64,000 nt of DNA from Macrostomum lignano (GCA_002269645.1 NIVC01000811.1:62001-126000), one strand, 5' to 3'. Shown: positions 4,265-46,086, counted from the stretch's first letter. The notes: generated by a model not told the origin, from the letters alone. Numbers and translations: made by a program.

Positions 4265-7200
4265 ATGGCTGAGGACGCCGAGCTGCAGGCAGCCACCGAG
4301 CTGACACGCAGCGGCTGGGACGTCAACGCGACCGACTCTGACGGCTGCTCGGCCCTGCACAACGCAGTGCAGCTCGGGAACTGCCGGGCTTCCGAGCGCC
4401 TCATCCAAGCAGCTGCTGACGTCGACCTGCAGATCAGCGCCGGCTCCAGCCCGCTGCACATGGCGGTTCAGCGAGACCATCTCCAGCTGGCGGAGCTGCT
4501 GCTGAGGTCGCAGGCCGATCCCAACCTGCTGGCTGGAGACGGCCAGACGGCCATTCAGATGGCCATCCGAGCTGGCAACGACGACCTGCTGCGGCTGCTG
4601 CTGGCGGCCGGTGCTGACGCGAACTGGCCGACCGGTGAGCCGCCGCTGCTCACCGCCATCTGTCTGGGACGGGCTGAGGCCGCGAGGCTGCTGGTCTCGG
4701 CCGGTGCCGACGCGAGCGTCCGAGCCCGGACAGTGTCCGAGGTCACTGCGCAGGTGCTTCAGACAGAAGAGGCGGAGCAGCTGAAGGAGAGTTTGCCGAT
4801 GCCTGCGATTCTCGCTGCAGCTAGCCTGGGACAGCGGGAGATTCTGGTCCACCTGCTGGCATGTGGAGCCGACTGCGACACGAGAGACGGCAAGGGGGCG
4901 ACCGTTTTGCACCATACGGCTCGCAAGGACGTGGAGATGCTGGCGATCGCTCTGTCCGTTCAGCAGGAGATCGACTGTCTGAATGACAAAGGCTCATCTG
5001 CCCTCCACTTTGCTGAATCGGAAGAAGCAGTAAATCAGCTTCTTTTGTTAGGAGCTGACATCGAAAGTAGAAACATCTTCGGCAATTCGCCACTTGTTGT
5101 GGATGCCAGCGATGGTTGCCTAAATGTAGTGGCAAAGCTGATCAACTGTGGAGCAAGCATCGATCTGCAGACCAAGTATGGCTGGTCACCACTGAATGCT
5201 GCCGCATTCAATGGCCACTTGGAAGTTGTGGCCAAGCTGATCGACTGTGGAGCAAGCATCGATCTGCAGAACAATAATGGCTGGTCACCACTGAACAGTG
5301 CCGCAGACAAAGGCCACTTGCAATTAGTGGCCAAGCTGATCGACTGTGGAGCAAGCATCGATCTGCAGAACAATGGGGGCTGGTCACCACTGAACAATGC
5401 CGCATATGAAGGCCACTTGGAAGTTGTGGCCAAGCTGATCGACTGTGGAGCAAGCATCGATCTGCAGCAAAATGATGGCGGGTCACCACTGAATGTTTCC
5501 GCACAGAATGGCCACTTGGAAGTAGTGGCCAAGCTGATCGACTGTGGAGCAAGCATTGATCTGCAGAACAAAAATGGCGACTCACCACTGTACATTTCCG
5601 CATTCAATGGTCACTTGCAAGTAGTGGCCAAGCTGATCGACTGTGGAGCAAGCATCGATCTGCAGAGCAAGTATGGCTGGTCACCACTGAACATTGCCGC
5701 ACAGAATGGCCACTTGGAAGTAGTGTCCAAGCTGATCGACTGTGGAGCAAGCATCGATCTGCAGCAAAATGATGGCGGGTCACCACTGTACATTGCCGCA
5801 CAGAATGGCCACTTGGAAGTAGTGTCCAAGCTGATCGACTGTGGAGCAAGCATCGATCTGCAGCAAAATGATGGCGTGTCACCACTGAATGTTGCCGCAC
5901 AGAATGGCCACTTGGAAGTAGTGGCCAAGCTGATCGACTGTGAAGCAAGCATCAATCTGCAGAAGAAGAATGGCGTGTCACCACTGCTCGTTGCATCCTT
6001 TCAAGGTCACTTGGAAGTAGTGTCCAAGCTGATCGACTGTGGAGCAAGAATCGATCTGCAGCAAAATGATGCCCGGTCACCACTGTACAGTGCCACATTC
6101 AATGGCCACTTGCAAGTTGTGGCCAAGCTGATCGACTGTGGAGCAAGAATCGATCTGCAGGACAATGATGGCTGGTCACCACTGTACAGTGCCGCAGAGA
6201 AAGACCACTTGCAATTAGTGGCCAAGCTGATCGACTGTGGAGCAAGCATCGATCTGCAGAACAAGAATGGCGACTCACCGCTGAATATTGCAGCATTCCA
6301 AGGGCACATACAAGTAGTGGCCAAGCTGATCGACTGTGGAGCAAGCATCAATCTGCAGAACAATAATGGCTGGTCACCACTGAACAGTGCCGCAGACAAA
6401 GGCCACTTGCAAGTAGTGGCCAAGCTGATCGACTGTGGAGCAAGCATCGATCTGCAGCAAAATGATGGCGGGTCACCACTGAATGTTTCCGCACAGAATG
6501 GCCACTTGGAAGTAGTGGCCAAGCTGATCGACTGTGGAGCAAGCATTGATCTGCAGAACAAAAATGGCGACTCACCACTGTACATTTCCGCATTCAATGG
6601 TCACTTGCAAGTAGTGGCCAAGCTGATCGACTGTGGAGCAAGCATCGATCTGCAGAGCAAGTATGGCTGGTCACCACTGAACATTGCCGCACAGAATGGC
6701 CACTTGGAAGTAGTGTCCAAGCTGATCGACTGTGGAGCAAGCATCGATCTGCAGCAAAATGATGGCGGGTCACCACTGTACATTGCCGCACAGAATGGCC
6801 ACTTGGAAGTAGTGTCCAAGCTGATCGACTGTGGAGCAAGCATCGATCTGCAGCAAAATGATGGCGTGTCACCACTGAATGTTGCCGCACAGAATGGCCA
6901 CTTGGAAGTAGTGGCCAAGCTGATCGACTGTGAAGCAAGCATCAATCTGCAGAAGAAGAATGGCTATTCACCACTGAACATTGCCGCACAGAATGGCCAC
7001 TTGGAAGTAGTGGCCAAGCTGATCGAATGTGAAGCGAGTACCGATCTGCAGAACAATGCTGGCTGGTCACCACTTAACAGTGCCGCATTAAATAACCACT
7101 TGCTAGTAGTGGCCAAGCTGATCGACTGTGGAGCAAGCATCGATCTGCAGAACAATAATGGCTGGTCACCACTGAACAGTGCCGCAGACAAAGGCCACTT

Positions 7201-8486
7201 GCAAGTAGTGGCCAAGCTGATCGACTGTGGAGCAAGCATCGATCTGCAGAACAATAATGGCTGGTCACCACTGAACAGTGCCGCAGACAAAGGCCACTTG
7301 CAATTAGTGGCCAAGCTGATCGACTGTGGAGCAAGCATCGATCTGCAGAACAATGATGGCTGGTCACCACTGAATGTTGCCGCACAGAATGGCCACTTGC
7401 AAGTAGTGGCCAAGCTGATCGACTGTGGAGCAAGCATCGATCTGCAGCAAAATGATGGCTGGTCACCACTGAACATTGCCGCACAGAATGGTCACTTGCA
7501 AGTCGTGGCCAAGCTGATCGACTGTGGAGCAAGCATCGATCTGCAGAACAAGTATGGCTGGTCACCACTGAACATTGCCGCACAGAATGGCCACTTGCAA
7601 GTTGTGGCCAAGCTGATCGACTGTGGAGCAAGCATCGATCTACAGAACAATGAAGGCTGGTCACCACTGTACAGTGCCGTAGTAAGAGGTCACTTGCAAG
7701 TTGTGGCCAAGCTGATCGACTGTGGAGCAAGCATCGATCTGCAGAACAATAATGGCAACTCACCACTTAATGCGGCGGCCCAGAAGGGACATTTTGATGT
7801 TGCCAATAAGCTTATTTGCTGTGGAGCAAATATGCATTTGCAGGATAATTTTGGATTCGCACCACTACACAATGCGGTGCAAGAAGGACACTTGAAAGTG
7901 GTGACCATTTTAGTTGAAAGTGGTGCAGGCATTGGTCTGGAAATTGACAGTTCTGGCGAGTTCATGCCCGAGTCTAAGAATGATTTGTGTTTTCCTGATG
8001 CTTCAGCTGAAGCAGCTCTCTCGGTGAACAATCCAGTGCACCTCGCCGCGGAATTCGACCATCCTGATGTTCTCCAATGTTTAATTAATAATTATAAGAA
8101 CGTGAATAAACTAAGTCGTGTGACCCCACTGCATGTTTCTTGCCTGTGCAATCTTGCTTATATTGCGAAGCAGCTGTTGCGTTCCAGAGCTGATGCAGAA
8201 CTCCGTGATGAAGATGGCTTAACAGCGGCAGACATTGCTGCAATTCGTGGCTCACCTGAGCTTTATTCGGTATTTTGCGACTTATCAAATGATGAGAAAC
8301 CGTCTGAACCTGTATCATTGCTGAATGTGGCTTCTCAGCAGTTACTGACGCACATTCACCTGGTTTGCTGCTTTGGAAATGCAGAGTTCGTGCAAGGCCT
8401 CTGCAGCAAAATGGTCGGAATTCGCGATCCAATTCGCGTGCCTGTTTTAGACTTCAAGTAAGTTTAGTAACCTACTCCAAACTTAG

Positions 8487-8574
<88 letters not shown>

Positions 8575-10722
8575 CAGTCAGTCAACTTCATTCCCACAGC
8601 GAGTCCGAGTTCTCAAAGCGGCTCCACGAGTCCCTCAGCAGCTCAGGATTCACCCGCATCAACGCGGCTGTTCAGAGCGGCACTGCGGCTGCCTTGGAAA
8701 AGATTCTGAGACAGAGTCTGGGCAGCCAATGCTTTTTGGTCGGCAGCTTCGCCGATGGCTGGGGCAACTGCCTCACAGGAATCTGCGGTCGGACTGATGC
8801 GGACTCCGACATGGATGTCACTGAGTTTCAGACGGGATTGCAGCTGCACATTGCGGGAAGTGGAGTACACGACGAAATGGAGAGAAAAGTAACGTGCAAA
8901 GAAGTCGAGTTCAGTGACGGTCACATCAAGCACCAAATAGACTGTGAGTTCTTGTCTGACTTCATAAAAAGGTACAACTTATGTTAAGTTGTTGATTTAA
9001 AAGTTTGCATGCCACTCCCATCCAACTCATTCAACTGCAGCCTCCAAGCCGAACGTCGCCACCTCTGGCATGACTTTGAGGCCTTCAGTCGACATTGTGA
9101 GAGCCATCCCCTGCTGCTTTTATCCTGAATTCGAAATTTTCCGACCCGGCTACAAGTCGTGCATTCCCGAGGACATTTTATCGGCCATTCGATCTGACAC
9201 CCAGTGCCACGCGGTCGCGGCAGCTCCTCCAGGTCTCGAGGGCCAGTGCATGCGATTTAGCACTACACTCATGGAGAGGGCGCTCATGCACAGTCTCACT
9301 ACACTTCAAGGTCAGCTCTTCGTCATGCTCAAGTACATCATCAAACGAGTGATTGTGAAGCGAGTCAAGGGTCTGAAGACCTACCACGCAAAGAACTTGC
9401 TCCTCTACATGCTGGACAGGACACCGGATGACGAGTGGCGACCGCACAATCTGATCAAGCTGGTGAGACAGTCGCTGCAGCTGCTGCTCGACTCTCTCAC
9501 TGACTCAAACAGCAGTGAGCAGCAGTGCATGCAGCACTTCTTCATGAGAGACGCCGCCATCTACTTGCGCAAGGACCACGAGGGAAAGACGAAGATCAAA
9601 GAAGTTGTGAGTCAAGTGATGGAGGAGCTGCCGCATCTGATGTCGGAGTTTGAGCAGACATTGATGAAGAACTCACCGAGTGTGATCGAATTTCACCCGT
9701 TTCTCATTATGCCGTTAACTGATGAGCTCAGCATTCCTGAATCAGACACAGAGTTCGAGTATCACCAGATCTATGATGCAGTGAAGAGAGCTTTAGAGAT
9801 GCTGAGCAAAGAGATTTCGAGCAGTGATGAAGCGAGTCACGTGCAGCAGCTCGGCTCGCTGCTCAATCGGATTCCAGACTGCGCCAGAACTGCCAGAGAG
9901 AGTCTGAGAGCTCTGATGGGGCTCAGAGAAGGAAAACCGATAGGCTCAGTTGTTGATGCTGCGAGTTCCACCGATGTGAGCAGCGGAATCGCTTGTCCGC
10001 AAAGTGAGGCTGATTCCATGTTCCACTTTAGCGTTGAAGAAGGCAGTGCAGAATACCTCACAGCGAGGCGTGACTTCGTGTGGAAGAGTCTGCTGGAGTC
10101 GGACTCAGCATGGAAGTTCATGTTCGATCCCGACCGAAAGCTGAATTTCCCATTCCTGCCCGACCACATGAGACACATTAAACTGGCATTCCCGTGGCGG
10201 GTGCCCTACAGGAGCTGCGACTGTGTCTTCATCAACTTTCACGCTCTGTACAAGGCGCTCCAACTCGAGGCGAGGAAGCTGAGCGGAGATGATGAAGGAG
10301 TCAACACGTTGCTAGGAGACTTTGGTTCCACCAGACTGGACACTCAGGAGCTGCTGATGATGCTGCATTACTGCAGCGATGAGGCGAAGCTGGTTGAGAT
10401 CATTCACAGCAACAGACAGATGATTGTGGACACTGGACTGGCTGGGCCCGTGCTGAGGATCCTGGATGAGAGGGTGAGTTCTCGCGATTTCTGTCCTGCT
10501 TGACTTTCTCGAATTTCGTCTTGCGCTGAGAAGCCGATGTGAAAATCGAAATTGCAGCCGGCACTGCGCCAGCGATGCGTTCGAGCGACTTGGGCGAAGG
10601 TGGAGGAGCTGAGCAGCCAGAGAGAGCTCTCATCGGCCGAGGAGCGGCTGCGGGTGGAGCTGAGGATGTGGAGAGCGAGGCATTTCCTGTGGGAGAAGGA
10701 GGGGATCGAGTCTGATGATTGA
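4265..10722 (+). CDS. Ankyrin-repeat protein fused to a C-terminal cGAS/Mab-21-like nucleotidyltransferase (cGLR-like), ~2044 aa, 4 exons
   Basis: join(4265..8457, 8600..8943, 9041..10473, 10558..10722) = 6135 nt. All junctions are GT-AG with matching phases (2, 1, 0). NTase motifs: VGS (GS 8742-8747), SDMDV (D8808, D8814), SVDIVRAIPC (D9091). Mab-21 C-lobe motifs: KTYHAKNLLLYMLD, EWRPHNL, QHFF. Exon 4 (PALRQ...ESDD*) is less certain than exons 1-3. Confidence 0.88.
5075..7930 (+). repeat. Coding array of ~29 ankyrin repeats (99-bp / 33-aa unit), ~27 nearly identical in framework
   Basis: Consensus xxGxSPLxxAAxxGHLxVVAKLIDCGASIDLQx. Framework DNA GCCAAGCTGATCGACTGTGGAGCAAGCATCGATCTGCAG recurs every 99 bp. 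Confidence 0.97.
8487..8574. repeat. (GATA)n microsatellite in intron 1 of the ankyrin-cGLR gene
   Basis: Direct read. Confidence 0.97.
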
Positions 10723-11219
10723 CAGGTGAGTGACTGAGGCTGATGATTGACAGGTGAGGGACTGAGGCTGATGATTGACAGGTGAGTGACTGAGGCTGAT
10801 GATTGACAGGTGAGTGACTGAGGCTGGTGAGTGACTGAGGCTGGTGAGTGACTGAGGCTGGTGAGTGACTGAGGCTGATGACTGACAGGTGAGTGACTGA
10901 GGCTGATGATTGACAGGTGAGTGACTGAGGCTGATGATTGACAGGTGAGTGACTGAGGCTGATGATTGACAGGTGAGTGACTGAGGCTGATAATTGACAG
11001 GTGAGTGACTGAGGCTGATGATTGACAGGTGAGTGACTGAGGCTGATGATTGACAGGTGAGTGACTGAGGCTGGTGAGTGACTGAGGCTGGTGAGTGACA
11101 GGTGAGTGACTGAGGCTGATGACTGACAGGTGAGTGACTGAGGCTGATGACTAACAGGTGAGTGACTGAGGCTGATAAGTGACAGGTGAGAGACTGAGGC
11201 TGATGATTGACAGATGAGT
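10713..11219. repeat. 28-bp minisatellite overlapping the cGLR stop codon
   Basis: Unit GATGATTGACAGGTGAGTGACTGAGGCT, with shorter variant units interspersed. Confidence 0.93.
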
Positions 11220-11347
11220 GAATGAAGCAAATTTTTCAGCCTCCCCATTTCCCATTGCAGGCCCAGCCGCACCGCAGCTCAAGGATGTCCGGCTTTGCAG
11301 AATTTTCATCGACTTTTGTGCGCCGCGTCTTTTGCCCGTTTTGCCGA

Positions 11348-11652
11348 GCTGACTGACCCTCAGCTGACTGACCCTCAGCTGACTGACCCCCAGCTGACTG
11401 ACCCTCAGCTGACTGACCCCCAGCTGACTGACCCCAAACTGACTGACCCTCAGCTGACTGACCCCCAGCTGACTGACCCCCAGCTGACTGACCCCCAGCT
11501 GACTGACCCCAGCTGACTGACCCCAGCTGACTGACCTCAGCTGACTGACCCCCAGCTGACTGACCTCAGCCGACTGACCCCCAGCTGACTGACCTCAGCT
11601 GACTGACCCCCAGCTGACTGACCCCAGCTGACTGGCCTCAGCTGACTGACCC
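11348..11652. repeat. 15-bp tandem repeat
   Basis: Unit CAGCTGACTGACCC(C/T), with 13-14-bp variants. Confidence 0.93.
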
Positions 11653-11822
11653 CGCACAGGAACGTACTGCATTGCAGCTTTAAGCCTCAGTGGGGCAGCT
11701 GCAGTACCGCTAAGCTGAAATGCAGTGCAAAATGCAGTGTGCCATGGCTCAGCGATAAGATTTTGTGAGCCTCACCACTTGCTGCAGCTGCCATTCCGCC
11801 TCCATGTCTGTCTTGTGAAGGC

Positions 11823-12020
11823 AGATTCCAAATCCCAGATTCCAAATCCCACATCCCAAATCCCAGATCCCAAATCCTAGATTCCAAATCCCAGATTCCT
11901 AATCCCAGATCCCAAATCCCAGATCCCATATCCCAGACTCCAAATCCCAGATTCCAAATCCCAGATCCCGCATCCCAGATCACAAATCCCAGATCGCAAA
12001 TCCCAGATCCCATATCCCAG
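11823..12020. repeat. 14-bp tandem repeat
   Basis: Unit CCCAGAT(T/C)CCAAAT. Confidence 0.9.
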
Positions 12021-12499
12021 AAGCAGTCAGTTGAAATCTCAGCTTCAGTGCTGACGCTACTCATGCCTTCTGTAATGCTGGCTCAGCAGCTCTCAGACTT
12101 TATTTTGGTCAGTTCTGCTTTTGCTGACTTGATTTTCCTGTCAGTTGCTTCCGTGCTGCAAATTGCTGCTTTTTTGAGCTGTGCTCAAATTCTTCCTGTT
12201 CTCTCATGTGCCGCCGTTTTTAACTGTTTTGTTTTACTTGTTTCAGTGTTTGTTTAAATGTCCATTTCAAATTTGTTAAAATGCTGTGTCAGGCTCTGCC
12301 ACTCCCATTGCTACTCAAAGTAGAGCAGGCTGATTCTGTGCTCTAATGGCTCAGGCATCTCAACTGACCTCAGGCCACGGCTGTCAGCATTTCATTGTTT
12401 ATTGCTGAGCAGCTGGGACTCAGGCTGGGATCTCCCCAGATCCTCAGGGCTGGTGCAATCCACTGGGGTCCTCGCGATTCTTCCCAACGTCTGTCTCTT

Positions 12500-14965
12500 T
12501 GGTTTCTGTGGTGTTCTCCCTGATCCCTGTGATCTCCCTGATCCCCGTGTTCAGCTCCCTAATCCCTGTGTTCTCCCTTATCCCTGTGTTCTCCCTGATC
12601 CCTGATCCCCGTGTTCAGCTCCCTAATCCCTGTGTTCTCCCAGATCCCTGTGTTCTCCCTGATCCCTGTGATCTCCCTAATCCCTGTGTTCTCCCTGATC
12701 CCTGTGATCTCCCTGATCCCTGTGATCTCCCTGATCCCTGTGTTCTCCCTGATCCCTGTGATATCCCTGATCCCTGTGTTCTCCCTGATCCCTGTGATCT
12801 CCCTGATCCCTGTGATCTCCCTGATCCCCGTGTTCTCCCTGATCCCTGTGATATCCCTGATCCCTGTGTTCTCCCTAATCCCTGTGTTCTCCCTAATCCC
12901 TGTGTTCTCCCTGATCCCTGTGTTCTCCCTAATCCCTGTGTTCTCCCTGATCCCTGTGATCTCCCTGATCCCCGTGTTCAGCTCCCTAATCCCTGTGTTC
13001 TCCCTAATCCCTGTGTTCTCCCTGATCCCTGTGATCTCCCTGATCCCTGTGTTCCCCCTGATCCCTGTGTTCTCCCTGATCCCTGTGATCTCCCTGATCC
13101 CTGTGTTCTCCCTGATCCCTGTGATATCCCTGATCCCTGTGTTCTCCCTGATTCCTGCTGTGTTCTCCCTGATCCCTGTGATCTCCCTGATCCCTGTGTT
13201 CTCCCTGATCCCTGTGTTCTCCCTGATCCCTGTGTTCTCCCTGATCCCTGTGATATCCCTGTGTTCTCCCTGATCCCTGTGATATCCCTGTGTTCTCCCT
13301 GATCCCTGTGATATCCCTGTGTTCTCCCTGATCCCTGTGTTCTCCCTGATCCCTGTGTTCTCCCTAATCCCTGTGTTCTCCCTGATCCCTGTGATCTCCC
13401 TGATCCCTGTGTTCTCCCTGATCCCTGTGTTCTCCCTGATCCCTGTGTTCTCCCTGATCCCTGTGATATCCCTGATCCCTGTGTTCTCCCTGATCCCTGT
13501 GTTTTCCCTGATCCCTGTGATATCCCTGATCCCTGTGTTCTCCCTAATCCCTGTGATATCCCTGATCCCTGTGATATCCCTGATCCCTGTGTTCTCCCTG
13601 ATCCCTGTGTTCTCCCTGATCCCTGTGTTCTCCCTGATTCCTGCTGTGTTCTCCCTGATCCCTGTGATCTCCCTGATCCCTGTGTTCTCCCTGATCCCTG
13701 TGTTCTCCCTGATCCCTGTGTTCTCCCTGATTCCTGCTGTGTTCTCCCTGATCCCTGTGATCTCCCTGATCCCTGTGTTCTCCCTGATCCCTGTGATATC
13801 CCTGATCCCTGTGTTCTCCCTAATCCCTGTGATATCCTTGATCCCTGTGATATCCCTGATCCCCGTGTTCTCCCGGATCCCTGTGATATCCCTGATCCCT
13901 GTGTTCTCCCTAATCCCTGTGTTCTCCCTAATCCCTGTGTTCTCCCTGATCCCTGTGTTCTCCCTAATCCCTGTGTTCTCCCTGATCCCTGTGATCTCCC
14001 TGATCCCCGTGTTCAGCTCCCTAATCCCTGTGTTCTCCCTAATCCCTGTGTTCTCCCTGATCCCTGTGATCTCCCTGATCCCTGTGTTCCCCCTGATCCC
14101 TGTGATATCCCTGATCCCTGTGTTCTCCCTGATCCCTGTGTTCTCCCTGATCCCTGTGATATCCCTGATCCCTGTGTTCTCCCTGATCCTTGTGTTCTCC
14201 CTGATCCCTGTGATCTCCCTGATCCCTGTGTTCTCCCTGATCCCTGTGTTCTCCCTGATCCCTGTGATATCCCTGTGTTCTCCCTGATCCCTGTGATATC
14301 CCTGTGTTCTCCCTGATCCCTGTGATATCCCTGTGTTCTCCCTGATCCCTGTGTTCTCCCTGATCCCTGTGTTCTCCCTAATCCCTGTGTTCTCCCTGAT
14401 CCCTGTGATCTCCCTGATCCCTGTGTTCTCCCTGATCCCTGTGTTCTCCCTGATCCCTGTGTTCTCCCTGATCCCTGTGATATCCCTGATCCCTGTGTTC
14501 TCCCTGATCCCTGTGTTTTCCCTGATCCCTGTGTTCTCCCTGATCCCTGTGATATCCCTGATCCCTGTGTTCTCCCTAATCCCTGTGATATCCCTGATCC
14601 CTGTGATATCCCTGATCCCTGTGTTCTCCCTGATCCCTGTGTTCTCCCTGATCCCTGTGTTCTCCCTGATTCCTGCTGTGTTCTCCCTGATCCCTGTGAT
14701 ATCCCTGATCCCTGTGATCTCCCTGATCCCTGTGTTCTCCCTGATCCCTGTGTTCTCCCTGATTCCTGCTGTGTTCTCCCTGATCCCTGTGATATCCCTG
14801 ATCCCTGTGTTCTCCCTAATCCCTGTGATATCCTTGATCCCTGTGATATCCCTGATCCCCGTGTTCTCCCGGATCCCTGAAATCTCCCTGATCCCTGTGT
14901 TCTCCCTGATCCCTGAAATCTCCCTGATTGCCGTGTTCTCCCTGATCCCTGTGTTCTCCCTGACC
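12500..14965. repeat. 18-bp minisatellite, ~2.5 kb, with ~1014-bp higher-order duplication
   Basis: Unit GATCCCTGTG(TT/AT)CTCCCT. A distinctive variant block at ~13252 recurs at ~14266. Confidence 0.96.
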
Positions 14966-15165
14966 CTCCCTCCTGACAAAGCTGTCAGCTGTTCCTGACC
15001 CTCCTGACAATGCTGTCAGCTGTCCCTGACCCTCCTGACAAGGCTGTCAGCTGTCCCTGACCCCCCTGACAATGCTGTCAGCTGTCCCTGACCCTCCTGA
15101 CAAGGCTGTCAGCTGTCCCTGACAATGCTGTCAGCTGTCCCTGACCCATCTGACAATGCTGTTAA
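14966..15165. repeat. ~31-bp tandem repeat
   Basis: Unit CCTGACAA(T/G)GCTGTCAGCTGTCCCTGACCCT. Confidence 0.88.
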
Positions 15166-28575: not shown

Positions 28576-31500
28576 TCAGTGGTTTCTCGGCCGGTGCATG
28601 TACTCCTTGAAATCGTACAGGCAGCCGATTGAGTGAAAATAGAAGAACACGTGCAGCGGTAGAGTGACAATGGCCAGAGACAAGTTCACTGGATCGTCGT
28701 TTCTGTAGCCAAGGATGAGGCTGAAAGCGCTACCGTAGATGAACCACTCGGCCGCGTTGCAAATTATCAAAAGCCACGCGCCGATGTCGGCCAGCCGCGG
28801 ATGAAGATTGCGAATTCGGCCGGCCAGGATTCGATCAACTAACGACACCTGTGTTATAGTCATAGAAAACTAAAGCAGCTAGAGGGACGCTGCAAATGAG
28901 ATTTCAACTTAGTCCCAAAGTGAAAGCGATGCATCAGAGAGTGGCGTTTGTACCATCAGATCCGGCGAAATCCCCCGATAAGTGCTGCTCTGACACATCG
29001 CTTTCATTATGGGGCTTTAAGTTGACATAAGACCCCAATTTATCCCATCATATCCTAATTCTGGCAGATAATTCTTGATAATTCTACACTCACTGCAAGA
29101 AAGAAACGTTGCAAATACTCGTAGAACTTCTAGCGGTGCTCGGAGCCTGGTTTTGAAGGCGATTAACGAATCGGTGAACATGTTCGATCAAGACTGTTTC
29201 GAATTAAGACAGAGGGCTATGAGAATCAAATTTAATCCAATATTATTTAGGGACAATTTTAGGGACTATTAAGATTAGGATTTAGGTTTGGTTAAGTTAG
29301 GAAATTAAGAACGTGCAATGTTATCAGAGCGTGGTGGAGTGTTGCAGTTGTGGACAGTTGCACTCCTACAAAAAGACACAAGCTTGATGACGGCATTGTA
29401 AAGGGCGAGTGCAGGCCGCCCTAAAAGTCTGTTTCCACTTTAAGGGGTCAATTGTGTCTTTTATGTCGGCCGGAGTTTCAACTGCATCCAATACTAAGAT
29501 ATTTCAGATGACGCACGAGCAGGAAGGTCCGTGGGAATCGGCCAGAATTGCGAGTCTGTGAGCGGCGCATTATCTTTCGATGGGAACATTTAAAGGGGTT
29601 GCGTGGGGGAAAACTTATTATAAATAGCGCGACAGTTTAACATATTTTTTTCACTCCCTTCTCTATCCAAATTACCTGCTTGCTGTTATCTTAAATTGTT
29701 ACCAACCTGCGCGTGCTTATCGCTTCCGCTGACCCGCGTGGATCAAAAGACTGAACACTACCATTACTTATTGATGTCTTCAACCTAAAATTAGGTTAAC
29801 TATTTATAAGCTAGGATGCAATAGTTGATAATAATAGAATTGAATTAGCATTAGTTATTAGTTGAATGATAGTGCCTCAGACTTATCCTATGTGCTTGAA
29901 GCTCGCTGAAATAATGCTTATATCATGCATGAAGATGAACAACAAAATATATATTTAAAGCTACCAGATTACTATACTCATTTATTCAATATTTACTCGC
30001 GAATGCATTTGCCTTAGTAAAAATGTTGACCAGCGGAAAGCTGAGAGAGTAGTTATTAATATTTATATGTACGTTTGCGGCCGACTAAAGAAACTTATAA
30101 GGTCATAGGGAGGGCAGCTGCCTCCTGGCACTGAGACCTCCTCCTGAGGGAGGTCACAAAGAGGGTCAGTTGTTTCATGGTAAAAAATGGAGATTCATGT
30201 GTTGACCTGCGGCGCTAAAACGGAGCCAAGCACCATGCAGAGGCGCCAATGTCTAAAGTGAGTTAGGAAAATGCTTGCACGCCATCCGAGACTGACTCAC
30301 CTGCAACACACTCTGTAAAATATTCAGCAGTGAAGTACCGCCTTCGATATATGGCACTCTGAACTGGCCCCCACCTACGACGAAGGCTCTCCAGAGGCGC
30401 TGAATTCTGTACAGCACCACACCGGACAGACCGCACCAGAGCATGACGCTATCCGCAGTGTGTCGGACTTCAGGCCCTCTGTCAGCCCTCTGAACCTGCA
30501 CGGAGCAGCATCGATTGACAGCCAACAGAAATAGGCATACTATAATGCCAATAGAATAGAACGGGACTTGTATTCGATTCACTGACGCATTCCAATCTTC
30601 AATGCTTTTTGTGCAGACCATAAAAAATTTGAATATCAGAGTGCCTACAGTGACGCTAATTAGAAACGCAAACATCAGGACCAGTTTGCAGCTGTATCTT
30701 CGAATTTGCTTTAAAAAATGTCCATTTACTTGGTAGTCTTCGCTGATGCTGCGTTTTATCTCGTCAACCGGCCTTCCGGAGAGCTGCTTTCTTAGAAAAA
30801 CTTTAACCCAACGGCCGGCGTTTGACATCACAGAGCAGGACAAAATCGCTCCCATGAGGAAGAATTCAGAGAGAAACGGGCCAAGACTCTCCACCAGCGA
30901 TTTTATTACATCCTTGACCGATGCCCGGTGTATTTTCGAGTCTGGGCACCAGTCGGAACGCTTCAAAACGAACACCTCGCCGATTTCGGATTTGGTGTGA
31001 AAGCACCAGCAAGATATATTGGCCGAAATGATCAAACTGAAAGCTAGAAAAGTCTGCTTCAGCTTCCAGAGCAGACAGACTTTGCTGTGAACGACAAAGA
31101 AGCGCACCTGGATCGGTACGAATGCCATTAGTAGGATGCATTTAACGGTTAAAGCGGCCAGAGCCGCTCCCGACGCGTGTCCACCAATCAGATGTTCGAC
31201 AAACTCCAATAAAACGCCGATCAATCCCAGAAACGAAAATACAATGAGTATTAATTCCAAAAATGTCGTAGGATAATTGGCCAAATGATGCGGCATCTTC
31301 AGACACCAGTGAACTGCTCCGATTTCCGGCAACCTGTTGTTGGGGTCATAGGGATTCACCAGTTCCGCTCGATCAATTGTCTTGTCCAGTATAACTCGGA
31401 ACGTCAGGTAGATGAAGGCGCCGATTCCGCCGAGTAACAGAAGACTCTCCATCCACAGGCTGAACATCTCAGCTGTACTCAACGATCCGTGGTGACTAGA

Positions 31501-32330
31501 ATTGTCCGACTTCTCGGAGGCGTCTTCGTGCTTGCTGGAATCTTCTTGGGCCTGGTTCAACGATGCGATGACAGACAAAGCAAATGTGAATAGGATGGTA
31601 AAGTAGCCCAGCAGCTTGTACAGCGGTGAGGGGTGCTGGGCGAGAACTGTCACTGGGCTTCTTTGGGCCACGTTGTTGGGTTCTTCTATCGCCTCCTGCT
31701 GCTCATCGGGGCTGTCAGACGGATTTACGAGTACGAGCGGACGCCGTTCTGGGTCCTGCGGTGCGCGTTGGATGAGTTGGTTTCAGCGAATGCTTTCAGT
31801 TTGAGTAGCTGCTTATAGCAATTGACTAGGGGCGAAGGGGAGGGAGCAAGGGGGCTCTGGTTCTGGCGCTTCTGGTGCTGGCGCCTCTGGTGCTGGCGCC
31901 TCTGGTGCTGGCGCCTCTGGTGCTGGCGCCTCTGGTGCTGGCGCCTCTGGTGCTGGCGCCTCTGGTGCTGGCGCCTCTGGTGCTGGCGCCTCTGGTGCTG
32001 GCGCCTCTGGTGCTGGCACCTCTGGTGCTGGCACCTCTGGTGCTGGCGCCTCTGGTGCTGGCGCCTCTGATGCTAGCGCCTCTGGTGCTAGCGCCTCTCA
32101 AAAATAAAATGACGCCTCCACTCCGATAAAACTGCGACTCTAATCAAAACGAAAAAGCATCCCTTTAAATCCTGTGAGCAGCTCTCTGGTTTGTAATCAG
32201 TGCGTTGCGTCAATCTGTAATTCTTCGTATTTTTCATAATACGTAACTTCATCACCATCAAAATCTAAAAAAACTTCAGATCCGATTGTTAATGAATATT
32301 TGTTTTACTCACGTGGCTGTCGTTCTGCAT
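28576..32330 (-). CDS. otop: Otopetrin-family proton channel (divergent), ~588 aa, 3 exons
   Basis: complement(join(28576..28869, 30301..31755, 32313..32330)). Exon 1 MQNDSH|GTGAGT joins in phase to DPERRP. Multi-TM protein with otopetrin motifs FVPIQVRFFVVHSK, ANISCW, GPFLSEF, LQSVLQ, ICNAAEW, PLHVFFYFHSIGCL. The exon 3 acceptor could alternatively lie a few codons further in, just before VSLVD. Confidence 0.85.
28904..29025. mobile_element. ~120-bp foldback/MITE hairpin (Kolobok-like ...CTTTAA end) in otopetrin intron 2
   Basis: Arms TCAACTT-AGTCCCAAAGTGAAAGCGATGCATCAGAG and (rc) TCAACTTAAAGCCCCATAATGAAAGCGATGTGTCAGAG. Confidence 0.65.
31850..32097. repeat. 15-bp tandem repeat in otopetrin intron 1
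   Basis: Unit CTGGTGCTGGCGCCT, ~16 copies. Confidence 0.95.

Positions 32331-36018: not shown

Positions 36019-46086
<10,068 letters not shown>

Follow-up and report, generated by a model that had tools for sequence, protein, structure and literature searches.

The subject of this analysis is a predicted gene on the plus strand (positions 4265-10722) of a 64,000-nucleotide (nt) stretch of the Macrostomum lignano genome (GCA_002269645.1, NIVC01000811.1:62001-126000), hereafter 'the window', from whose first letter all positions are counted; the gene appears to fuse a very long ankyrin array to a nucleotidyltransferase (NTase) of the cGAS-like receptor (cGLR) type. Translation of the window splits the region into three plus-strand open reading frames (ORFs; 4265-8461, 8694-8987 and 9070-10503), which an initial annotation, made from the sequence alone, had joined by phase-consistent splicing at 8457/8600, 8943/9041 and 10473/10558 into one protein of about 2,044 residues. 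The same junctions emerge here: exons 4265-8457, 8600-8943, 9041-10473 and 10558-10722 sum to 6,135 nt, a multiple of three, with the sole stop at the terminus and a product of 2,044 amino acids, and the introns are canonical GT-AG and phase-compatible, with donors CAA/GTAAGT, ACT/GTGAGT and AGG/GTGAGT and three pyrimidine-rich acceptors ending in CAG. On the evidence of its sequence, we read the locus as a single intact M. lignano gene, encoding an ankyrin array and a cGAS-like enzyme, and belonging to an expanded 'ANK-cGLR' family in this species. Its features are as follows.

4265-8457, plus strand: exon 1, with the start codon, the entire ankyrin region (about 38 repeats) and a non-repeat linker, as defined by the ORF, the Pfam Ank matches and the splice model.
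5126-7798, plus strand: 27 near-identical ankyrin units of 33 amino acids (99 bp); Tandem Repeats Finder gives period 99, 26.7 copies and 87% matches.
5426-5974 and 6416-6964, plus strand: an identical block duplicated within the array, 549 nt and perfect, offset by 990 nt, or 10 units.
8458-8599, plus strand: intron 1, 142 nt, GTAAGT...CAG, with an in-frame TAG at 8565 and no in-frame ATG.
8600-8943, plus strand: exon 2, with the N-terminal spine helices of the NTase, strand beta-1, the GS loop at 8742-8747 and the SDMDV Asp codons at 8808-8810 and 8814-8816.
8944-9040, plus strand: intron 2, 97 nt, GTGAGT...CAG, following the 'GH....' strand, its position kept in paralogue P0013.
9041-10473, plus strand: exon 3, with the SVDIV Asp at 9091-9093, RFSTTLME at 9253-9276, KTYHAK at 9376-9393, the Mab-21_C helix bundle at about 9319-9564 and most of the C-terminal domain.
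9739-10722, plus strand: C-terminal domain, about 300 amino acids, mostly helical, family-specific and split by intron 3.
10474-10557, plus strand: intron 3, 84 nt, GTGAGT...CAG.
10558-10722, plus strand: exon 4, with the final 54 codons and the stop at 10720-10722.

The predicted N-terminus, MAEDAEL, is similar to the Met start, MAEGAAG, of paralogue P0043. At the other end of the gene, the stop codon sits in unit 1 of a 28-bp minisatellite (10708-11225), whose units carry GTGAGT donor-like motifs, and the exact 3' end is slightly uncertain for that reason; two database models of the gene, P0001 and P0002, terminate four residues before the stop at 10720-10722. P0001 (UniProt A0A1I8IHJ4) is 99% identical and 5'-truncated, with its start at the first complete codon past the exon-2 acceptor. 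Six residues that the window has and that hardly vary across the family, LTTLQG (~9295-9312), are missing from P0001; the difference could be allelic, could mark P0001 as a homeologue or could stem from an error in the gene model. Intron 1 holds a perfect (GATA)22 microsatellite (8487-8574), which places stops in every frame between the ankyrin and NTase exons.

The region downstream of the ankyrins had been annotated as an NTase of the Mab-21/cGAS fold with a GS motif and all three metal-binding acids, and several approaches bear this out. Read directly from the sequence, GS lies at 8742-8747 and the acids at D8808, D8814 and D9091, with 20 residues between GS and DxD, each as first proposed. 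The resulting active site, LVGS-X20-DMDV-X57-VDI, follows the published cGLR motif, h[QT]GS-X8-20-[DE]h[DE]h-X50-90-h[DE]h, with one deviation immediately before GS (Li et al. 2023, PMC9980059; bioRxiv 10.1101/2023.02.22.529553, later Cell); the same paper defines cGLRs by motif, homology over both lobes and AlphaFold similarity, its methods also giving a looser G[S/G] plus triad. Of the Ank and Mab-21 profiles, which the initial annotation had proposed to check, Ank and Mab-21_C are found, the latter (PF20266) scoring 31.9 bits in exon 3 (cut-off 24.1), and that for the NTase lobe of Mab-21 (PF03281) finds no match in the Pfam scan.

An AlphaFold2 model of the NTase, built from P0001 (99% identical, without LTTLQG) on 25 paralogues, has a predicted local distance difference test score (pLDDT) of 82.7 and a predicted template-modelling score (pTM) of 0.83. 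Its top 50 Foldseek matches are to Sp-cGLR1 (8gjy), human and mouse cGAS, MAB21L1 and MB21D2. These matches have a probability of 1.0 and an E of ~1e-6, with alignments of 350-400 columns, target-normalised template-modelling (TM) scores of 0.5-0.57 and identities of 11-15%; the C-terminal region does, in other words, model as a Mab-21 fold, with predicted structural likeness to known cGLR/CD-NTase enzymes. A strand at residues 44-47 is followed by GS, DMDV opens a strand at 70-76 and VDI falls within 130-139, which is the classical Pol-beta arrangement.

Searches by sequence converge on the same enzymes once the ankyrins are set aside. When the C-terminal 664 amino acids were compared with the PDB by sequence only, nothing beyond chance matches came back, and a first family profile (857 positions) that retained ankyrin columns was swamped by ankyrin proteins (ankyrin-1, NOMPC and DARPins); an ankyrin-free profile of 13 paralogues, run against the whole PDB, matched only cGAS (E=2e-5) and Sp-cGLR1. 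For hhalign, the target was a cGAS/cGLR sequence alignment assembled from Table S3 of Li et al. The comparison reached 98.5% probability (E=3.8e-15), pairing SVDIV with SVDIT, RFSTTLME with RLSFSHIE and KTYHAK with SSYHVK (TYHAK with SYHVK). We take the Asp of SVDIT, aligned with that of SVDIV, to be the third catalytic Asp, D319 of human cGAS, and the aligned R, S, E, Y and K residues are presumably those of the cGAS nucleotide pocket. The stretch that Pfam and hhalign (98.5%) align runs from the third Asp to the helix bundle and is clearly homologous, the first half of the N-lobe (spine, GS and DxD) being left unaligned by the sequence methods used; the N-lobe is assigned from its motif pattern and from the predicted structure, and should be regarded as a model.

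Across the 13 paralogues, G49, S50, G54, W55, G56, S70, D71, D73, R187, S189, T190, E194, Y230 and K233 are invariant, the third Asp (D133) is at least 90% conserved, and, among the 62 family members whose sequence extends over the N-lobe, 56 keep a GS..GWG..DxD signature, GS[FYV]x[DE]GWG...[DE]x[DE]. The retrieved relatives are only 35-45% identical to the window protein, and that GS, DxD, the third Asp and the pocket should be held across such distances argues that catalysis is under selection.

In charge and in its zinc thumb the enzyme departs from cGAS. Nucleic-acid-sensing cGLRs have a high isoelectric point (pI) (PMC9980059); the core here has a pI of 6.1, and the whole protein a pI of 5.0 and a net charge of -87, values unlike those expected of the basic, high-pI nucleic-acid-binding surface of cGAS. 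The zinc-thumb insertion, H(X5)CC(X6)C, which cGAS has between its RLSFS and SYHVK motifs, is likewise absent, hhalign placing a gap opposite the 'SKTccenkeekcC' insert of cGAS. Between the third Asp and the RxSTT motif lie the family-invariant C141, C171 and H172, along with C140 (~9112-9117 and ~9205-9210); these Cys/His residues may together bind a metal, at a site different from the zinc thumb of cGAS.

Turning to the array, the initial annotation spoke of more than 30 ankyrin repeats, and we count about 38, with Pfam matches on exon 1 for Ank_2 (E=1.7e-269) and Ank (E=3.6e-202, 28 stretches); in its tandem 33-residue repeats this is an ankyrin-repeat protein. Judged by per-position entropy across the 27 near-identical units, 13 of the 33 positions never vary, most of the rest hold two or three residues, and positions 16, 18, 20, 25, 28 and 29 are 'hypervariable', with five to seven different residues each. 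At the protein level 20 of the 27 units are distinct, and the reading frame is intact throughout the array. In the DARPin register (consensus DxxGxTPLHLAAxxGH...), four of the six hypervariable positions are among the six that are randomised in DARPins, the other two adjoining them in the beta-turn/first helix; on this mapping, the overlap has a hypergeometric P of ~0.005. The pairwise ratio of nonsynonymous to synonymous differences (pN/pS) is 1.76 at the hypervariable positions and 0.56 elsewhere, a contrast that is partly circular because the positions were picked for varying. Nearly all of the differences between repeats would thus appear to concentrate at canonical ankyrin binding-surface positions, on the concave face of the solenoid. 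That the 27 repeats are so nearly identical points to unequal crossing-over, which is able to reshuffle a binding surface quickly; the 549-nt duplicate would represent either a very recent exchange of this kind or an assembly artefact.

Downstream of the NTase, the C-terminal domain carries motifs that are kept in paralogues (LPDCAR..RE.L.AL, DSAWKF, NFDAL and D.QEL) and, modelled alone with AlphaFold2, scores a pLDDT of 81.8 and a pTM of 0.81. No relatives of its fold were returned by Foldseek from the PDB (best E=0.5) or from the BFVD viral models (best E=1.1), and neither Pfam nor PADLOC gives a match.

The initial annotation had suggested a search for paralogues, which yields many M. lignano relatives with GS..GWG..DxD, most with an upstream region, and, beyond this species, environmental fragments only. 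A query with the C-terminal 647 residues retrieved 30 proteins, among which all those with a named source are from M. lignano, the remainder including two short Joint Genome Institute (JGI) metagenome fragments. A search of 1.84 billion proteins, made with the ankyrin-containing profile, gave 668,245 matches, from which about 35 NTase-bearing representatives were recovered; ten further representatives from this search were checked, and each is from M. lignano. The ankyrin-free profile likewise found M. lignano only, plus three short environmental fragments. Among the proteins retrieved, the NTase core is carried by 64 database entries, and from sequence the ANK-cGLR family looks to be a large, lineage-restricted expansion, found in these searches only in M. 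lignano and the three environmental fragments. Such counts are inflated by alleles and homeologues, as M. lignano is described as a hidden polyploid (PMC10468722).

Of the environmental sequences, one fragment with 49% identity is filed under a 'Kangiellaceae bacterium' metagenome-assembled genome (JAZBNS010000776.1, 1,065 nt; our L003) and is almost certainly eukaryotic DNA that has been mis-binned into a bacterial genome. Similar fragments on two JGI metagenome contigs, including Ga0450782_029656 (1,745 nt; L004), indicate that related animals occur in environmental samples. Within the family, P0147 (1,409 amino acids, named 'Delta-like protein') has part of an NTase core at its start (profile positions 75-360), two NTase stretches make P0031 (1,346 amino acids) a possible tandem cGLR, P0029 bears the name 'LisH domain-containing', and in P0137 (3,379 amino acids) the NTase is preceded by about 2,090 residues; the merging of gene models may account for some of these unusual architectures. 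A called gene with a 2,303-residue product lies some 2 kb downstream from P0043 (L002, 11152-12109); no Pfam match is recorded for it, and it runs off the end of the locus.

Elsewhere in the window, the 28-bp minisatellite is followed by others of 15, 14 and 18 bp (10708-13500 in all), which generate spurious long ORFs, such as that of 806 amino acids at 12559-14979 on the minus strand. The neighbours include an otopetrin-like exon (30253-31671, minus strand), which at 25.9 bits is slightly below the Pfam cut-off, and an exon with immunoglobulin and fibronectin-III domains (43548-44852, plus strand). Both are ordinary animal gene fragments, and they were ruled out as possible partners. No second cGLR or ankyrin gene is present within the 64,000 nt.

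Much of this ground has been surveyed before. Li et al. report that 87% of cGLRs stand alone, TPR or ankyrin modules being attached to some of the others (Fig. 1C, S2A), that most platyhelminths have no cGLR besides Mab21-like proteins, and that the phylum is reported to have lost Toll-like receptors (PMC9980059). Their Table S2 lists five M. lignano proteins with Ank_2 (PAA68676.1, PAA86972.1, PAA45980.1, PAA58690.1 and PAA68216.1), and ANK-cGLR fusions are also catalogued there in Stylophora pistillata (PMC9980059). Five M. lignano proteins were cloned for their 140-enzyme screen (Table S3, rows 89-93) as constructs that begin close to the NTase rather than with the ankyrin array, all of them carrying GS..GWG..SD.D, and were tested with nucleic-acid ligands (PMC9980059). 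One of our relatives, P0018, which matches the window protein at E=2e-77, is identical in sequence to PAA57558.1 throughout the part that the screen table shows. In the portions of the paper available to us, Li et al. give no function, ligand or product for ANK-cGLRs, and do not discuss the hypervariability of the repeats or the C-terminal domain (PMC9980059). The claim of the initial annotation that no receptor of this architecture had been characterised therefore stands as regards function, our literature searches having found no characterised ANK-cGLR and the five screened relatives being unflagged, and is overstated as regards the architecture itself, which Li et al. had already listed.

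Synthesising these findings, we consider the best overall explanation, to which we would give a probability of roughly 60%, to be an intact ANK-cGLR gene encoding a regulated enzyme that makes a nucleotide messenger and is gated by a ligand captured on its ankyrins. We suggest that the enzyme would be held under regulation and would produce a nucleotide second messenger, probably a cyclic dinucleotide; that it would be activated not by nucleic acid bound to its core but by a ligand, most probably a protein or another macromolecule, held on the concave side of the ankyrin solenoid; and that binding would then relieve, or induce, a conformational state of the NTase. Unequal crossing-over among the near-identical repeats would serve to reshuffle the binding surface, and the C-terminal domain may act in oligomerisation/assembly or in 'hand-off' to a partner further down the pathway. 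Three features argue against direct nucleic-acid sensing, namely the acidic core, the lack of a zinc thumb and the unflagged status of enzyme-only constructs given nucleic acids, while the variation of the ankyrin surface argues that recognition lies in the array; a scheme in which ankyrins sense the ligand and so gate messenger synthesis is compatible with the variable surface positions, the acidic core and the absent thumb.

A number of observations weigh against this explanation. As regards the enzyme, V precedes GS where the published motif has Q/T, PF03281 finds no match, and no family member has a known activity, the five screened relatives falling outside the 15 actives; the Note column of the screen table, which flags actives (for example '01, Pd-cGLR'), is empty for rows 89-93 (PMC9980059). 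As regards a pathway, the planarian Schmidtea has neither cGAS nor STING, according to a 2026 study (PMC13563047), and STING in Macrostomum was not found in our literature searches. The pN/pS contrast is, as noted, partly circular, and the repeat number may be an artefact of assembly, given the 549-nt perfect duplicate. As regards the fusion, junction 1 (8457/8600) is, at this locus, a prediction from sequence; the sole database models of the gene, P0001 and P0002, are without ankyrins and begin exactly at the exon-2 acceptor, just as a trans-spliced 5' end would; the unspliced ankyrin ORF stops right at the donor; and the 142-nt gap fits the typical operon spacing of M. lignano (PMC8629364).

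One alternative is that the protein is indeed fused but its Mab-21 domain is no messenger synthase, being instead either an inert/structural module of the kind seen in MAB21L1 and MB21D2 or an NTase of some other chemistry, acting on a protein or RNA held by the ankyrins. This is a real, if minor, prospect. It draws on the unflagged relatives, the V before GS, the silent PF03281 and the undocumented STING, as well as on the presence of MAB21L1 and MB21D2 among the top structural matches, and has to contend with the retention of GS, DxD and the third Asp in dozens of paralogues at 35-45% identity, and with the invariance of the residues aligned to the R, S, E, Y and K of the cGAS nucleotide pocket. 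The negative result of the screen is moreover weak evidence, because both the ankyrin part and non-nucleic-acid ligands were absent from it.

A second alternative leaves the gene real and is not exclusive of the ANK-cGLR explanation: the 27-unit array may have been inflated or mis-ordered in the assembly of a 99-bp repeat, so that the true protein is shorter or differently ordered. We regard this as somewhat unlikely. A perfect 549-nt copy lying exactly 10 units away, in an array whose units otherwise match at ~87%, is what such an error might leave behind, M. lignano has a genome described as difficult (PMC10468722), and most paralogues have much shorter arrays; equally, 20 of the 27 units are distinct as protein and the frame is unbroken, and other members also possess very long N-termini, with ~2,090 residues upstream of the NTase in P0137 and ~950 in P0043.

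That the ankyrin and NTase parts are two genes of an operon is a serious question, because M. lignano uses spliced-leader (SL) trans-splicing, the ankyrin ORF stops within the donor and the acceptor lies 142 nt further on. Under such a model, the ankyrin ORF would end at the TAA at 8459-8461, which exon 1 meets inside GTAAGT when it is read through unspliced, and a separate NTase mRNA would be trans-spliced at 8600; the 138-142 nt gap, which agrees with the usual operon spacing of the species, the ankyrin-free P0001 and P0002 models and the stop at the donor all speak for it. The spliced leader of M. lignano is 35 nt long and ends in ATG (PMC8629364), and when placed on the 8600 acceptor this ATG opens an ORF of only 66 codons, out of the NTase frame. 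Within the NTase frame, the first Met is residue 71, beyond the spine helices, strand beta-1 and the GS loop, and an in-frame TAG (8565) lies upstream, so that a stand-alone product would be without all three of these elements. Between 8440 and 8600 there is no AATAAA or ATTAAA, and the cis-splice is in phase. Paralogues tell the same story: at least 150 residues precede the NTase in 48 of 65 family proteins (the window protein counted), and the NCBI models P0010, P0013 and P0043 start with Met and hold both parts in one model. P0043 (1,575 amino acids, NTase from residue 957) is colinear with the window protein (37% identity, E=2e-139) from the last repeats through the linker and the NTase into the tail, and has a homologous intron of ~94 nt, a few aligned residues from the position of intron 1. 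The operon/trans-splicing model is therefore rejected on frame and start-codon grounds, and we hold it to be improbable; the one-gene reading of the initial annotation, for which separate genes were the chief threat, survives, and a fused gene is, from its sequence features, very probable.

Least probable is an arrangement like that of RNase L, in which the ankyrins would bind a nucleotide messenger, whether the protein's own or that of another enzyme, and the protein would amplify or relay the signal: the binding of 2',5'-oligoadenylate (2-5A) by the ankyrins of RNase L is its sole precedent, nothing in the sequence points there, the profile search of the PDB gave no similarity to RNase L beyond generic ankyrin, and, where RNase L needs a few specialised repeats, 27 near-identical, surface-varying units better fit an extended macromolecular interface.

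Returning to the ligand-gated ANK-cGLR, we also speculate, while holding the idea to be doubtful as it stands, that these genes provide M. lignano with a diversified repertoire of intracellular receptors, whose reshuffling arrays would bind pathogen proteins, switch on the enzyme and relay the signal through the C-terminal domain or through a receptor other than STING. If true, this would be the first demonstration of a protein ligand for a cGLR, and would couple recognition of an NLR- or VLR-like kind to nucleotide signalling. Several active cGLRs answer to an unidentified ligand that is neither DNA nor RNA (PMC9980059). As the appended module is a protein-binding scaffold, one would naturally look to ANK-cGLR fusions as candidate sensors of ligands other than nucleic acid. 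The window gene, with its very long array, its differences on the binding face, its acidic core and its extra conserved domain, is an extreme and well-defined candidate, and as M. lignano is a laboratory model with RNA interference and transgenesis, the idea is a testable one.

Known systems invite comparison, first cGAS of human and mouse, Sp-cGLR1 and Drosophila cGLR1, with which the enzyme shares the predicted bilobed Mab-21/cGAS fold, GS and DxD, the third Asp, RxSxS/T..E and YHxK; it differs in its 11-15% identity and TM of ~0.5, its lack of a zinc thumb, its core pI of 6.1, a GS-to-DxD spacer that at 20 residues is at the upper limit of the published motif, and some 1,400 extra residues upstream and 300 downstream. 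MAB21L1 and MB21D2 have the same fold, and neither has a known product. Mab21L1/2/3 are without a predicted functional active site (PMC9980059, Figure 1 legend), whereas the window family retains the acidic triad.

RNase L resembles the window protein in joining ankyrins at the N-terminus to an immune enzyme, and offers a possible model of allosteric ankyrin gating. Its nine repeats bind 2-5A and its effector is a nuclease, so that there the ankyrins receive the messenger, where the window enzyme, with about 38 repeats, would make one. Bacterial CD-NTases of cyclic-oligonucleotide-based anti-phage signalling systems (CBASS) belong to the same enzyme superfamily and follow the same signalling logic; the relatives found for the window protein are animal cGLRs, and none of the CD-NTase models in PADLOC matches it, the sole PADLOC match being one to LmuA at chance level (E=0.031). 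In fungal NLR-like (STAND) proteins, the ANK, TPR and WD repeats are said, in work attributed to Paoletti and Saupe and to Dyrka et al., to show high internal conservation, reportedly read as shuffling for new specificities. The likeness to these lies in near-identity at the DNA level combined with variation of the binding surface, and is an analogy only, the output here being a cGLR; the 'NLR-like logic' of the initial annotation holds in that limited sense, because no NACHT or NB-ARC domain is matched by Pfam across the 2,044 residues.

Finally, the catalogued ANK-cGLRs share with the window protein their architecture (N-terminal ankyrins and C-terminal cGLR), their species and clade, and a GS[FY]x[DE]GWG...SD[IV]D motif. 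Both the architecture and the M. lignano clade were catalogued by Li et al. 2023, the family is uncharacterised, and the window gene is an extreme paralogue rather than a new class. What is new is the distribution of the family, the acidic core without a zinc thumb, the conserved C-terminal domain and, in contrast to the catalogued members, a much longer array, of about 38 repeats, in which 27 near-identical units vary mainly at the binding surface.

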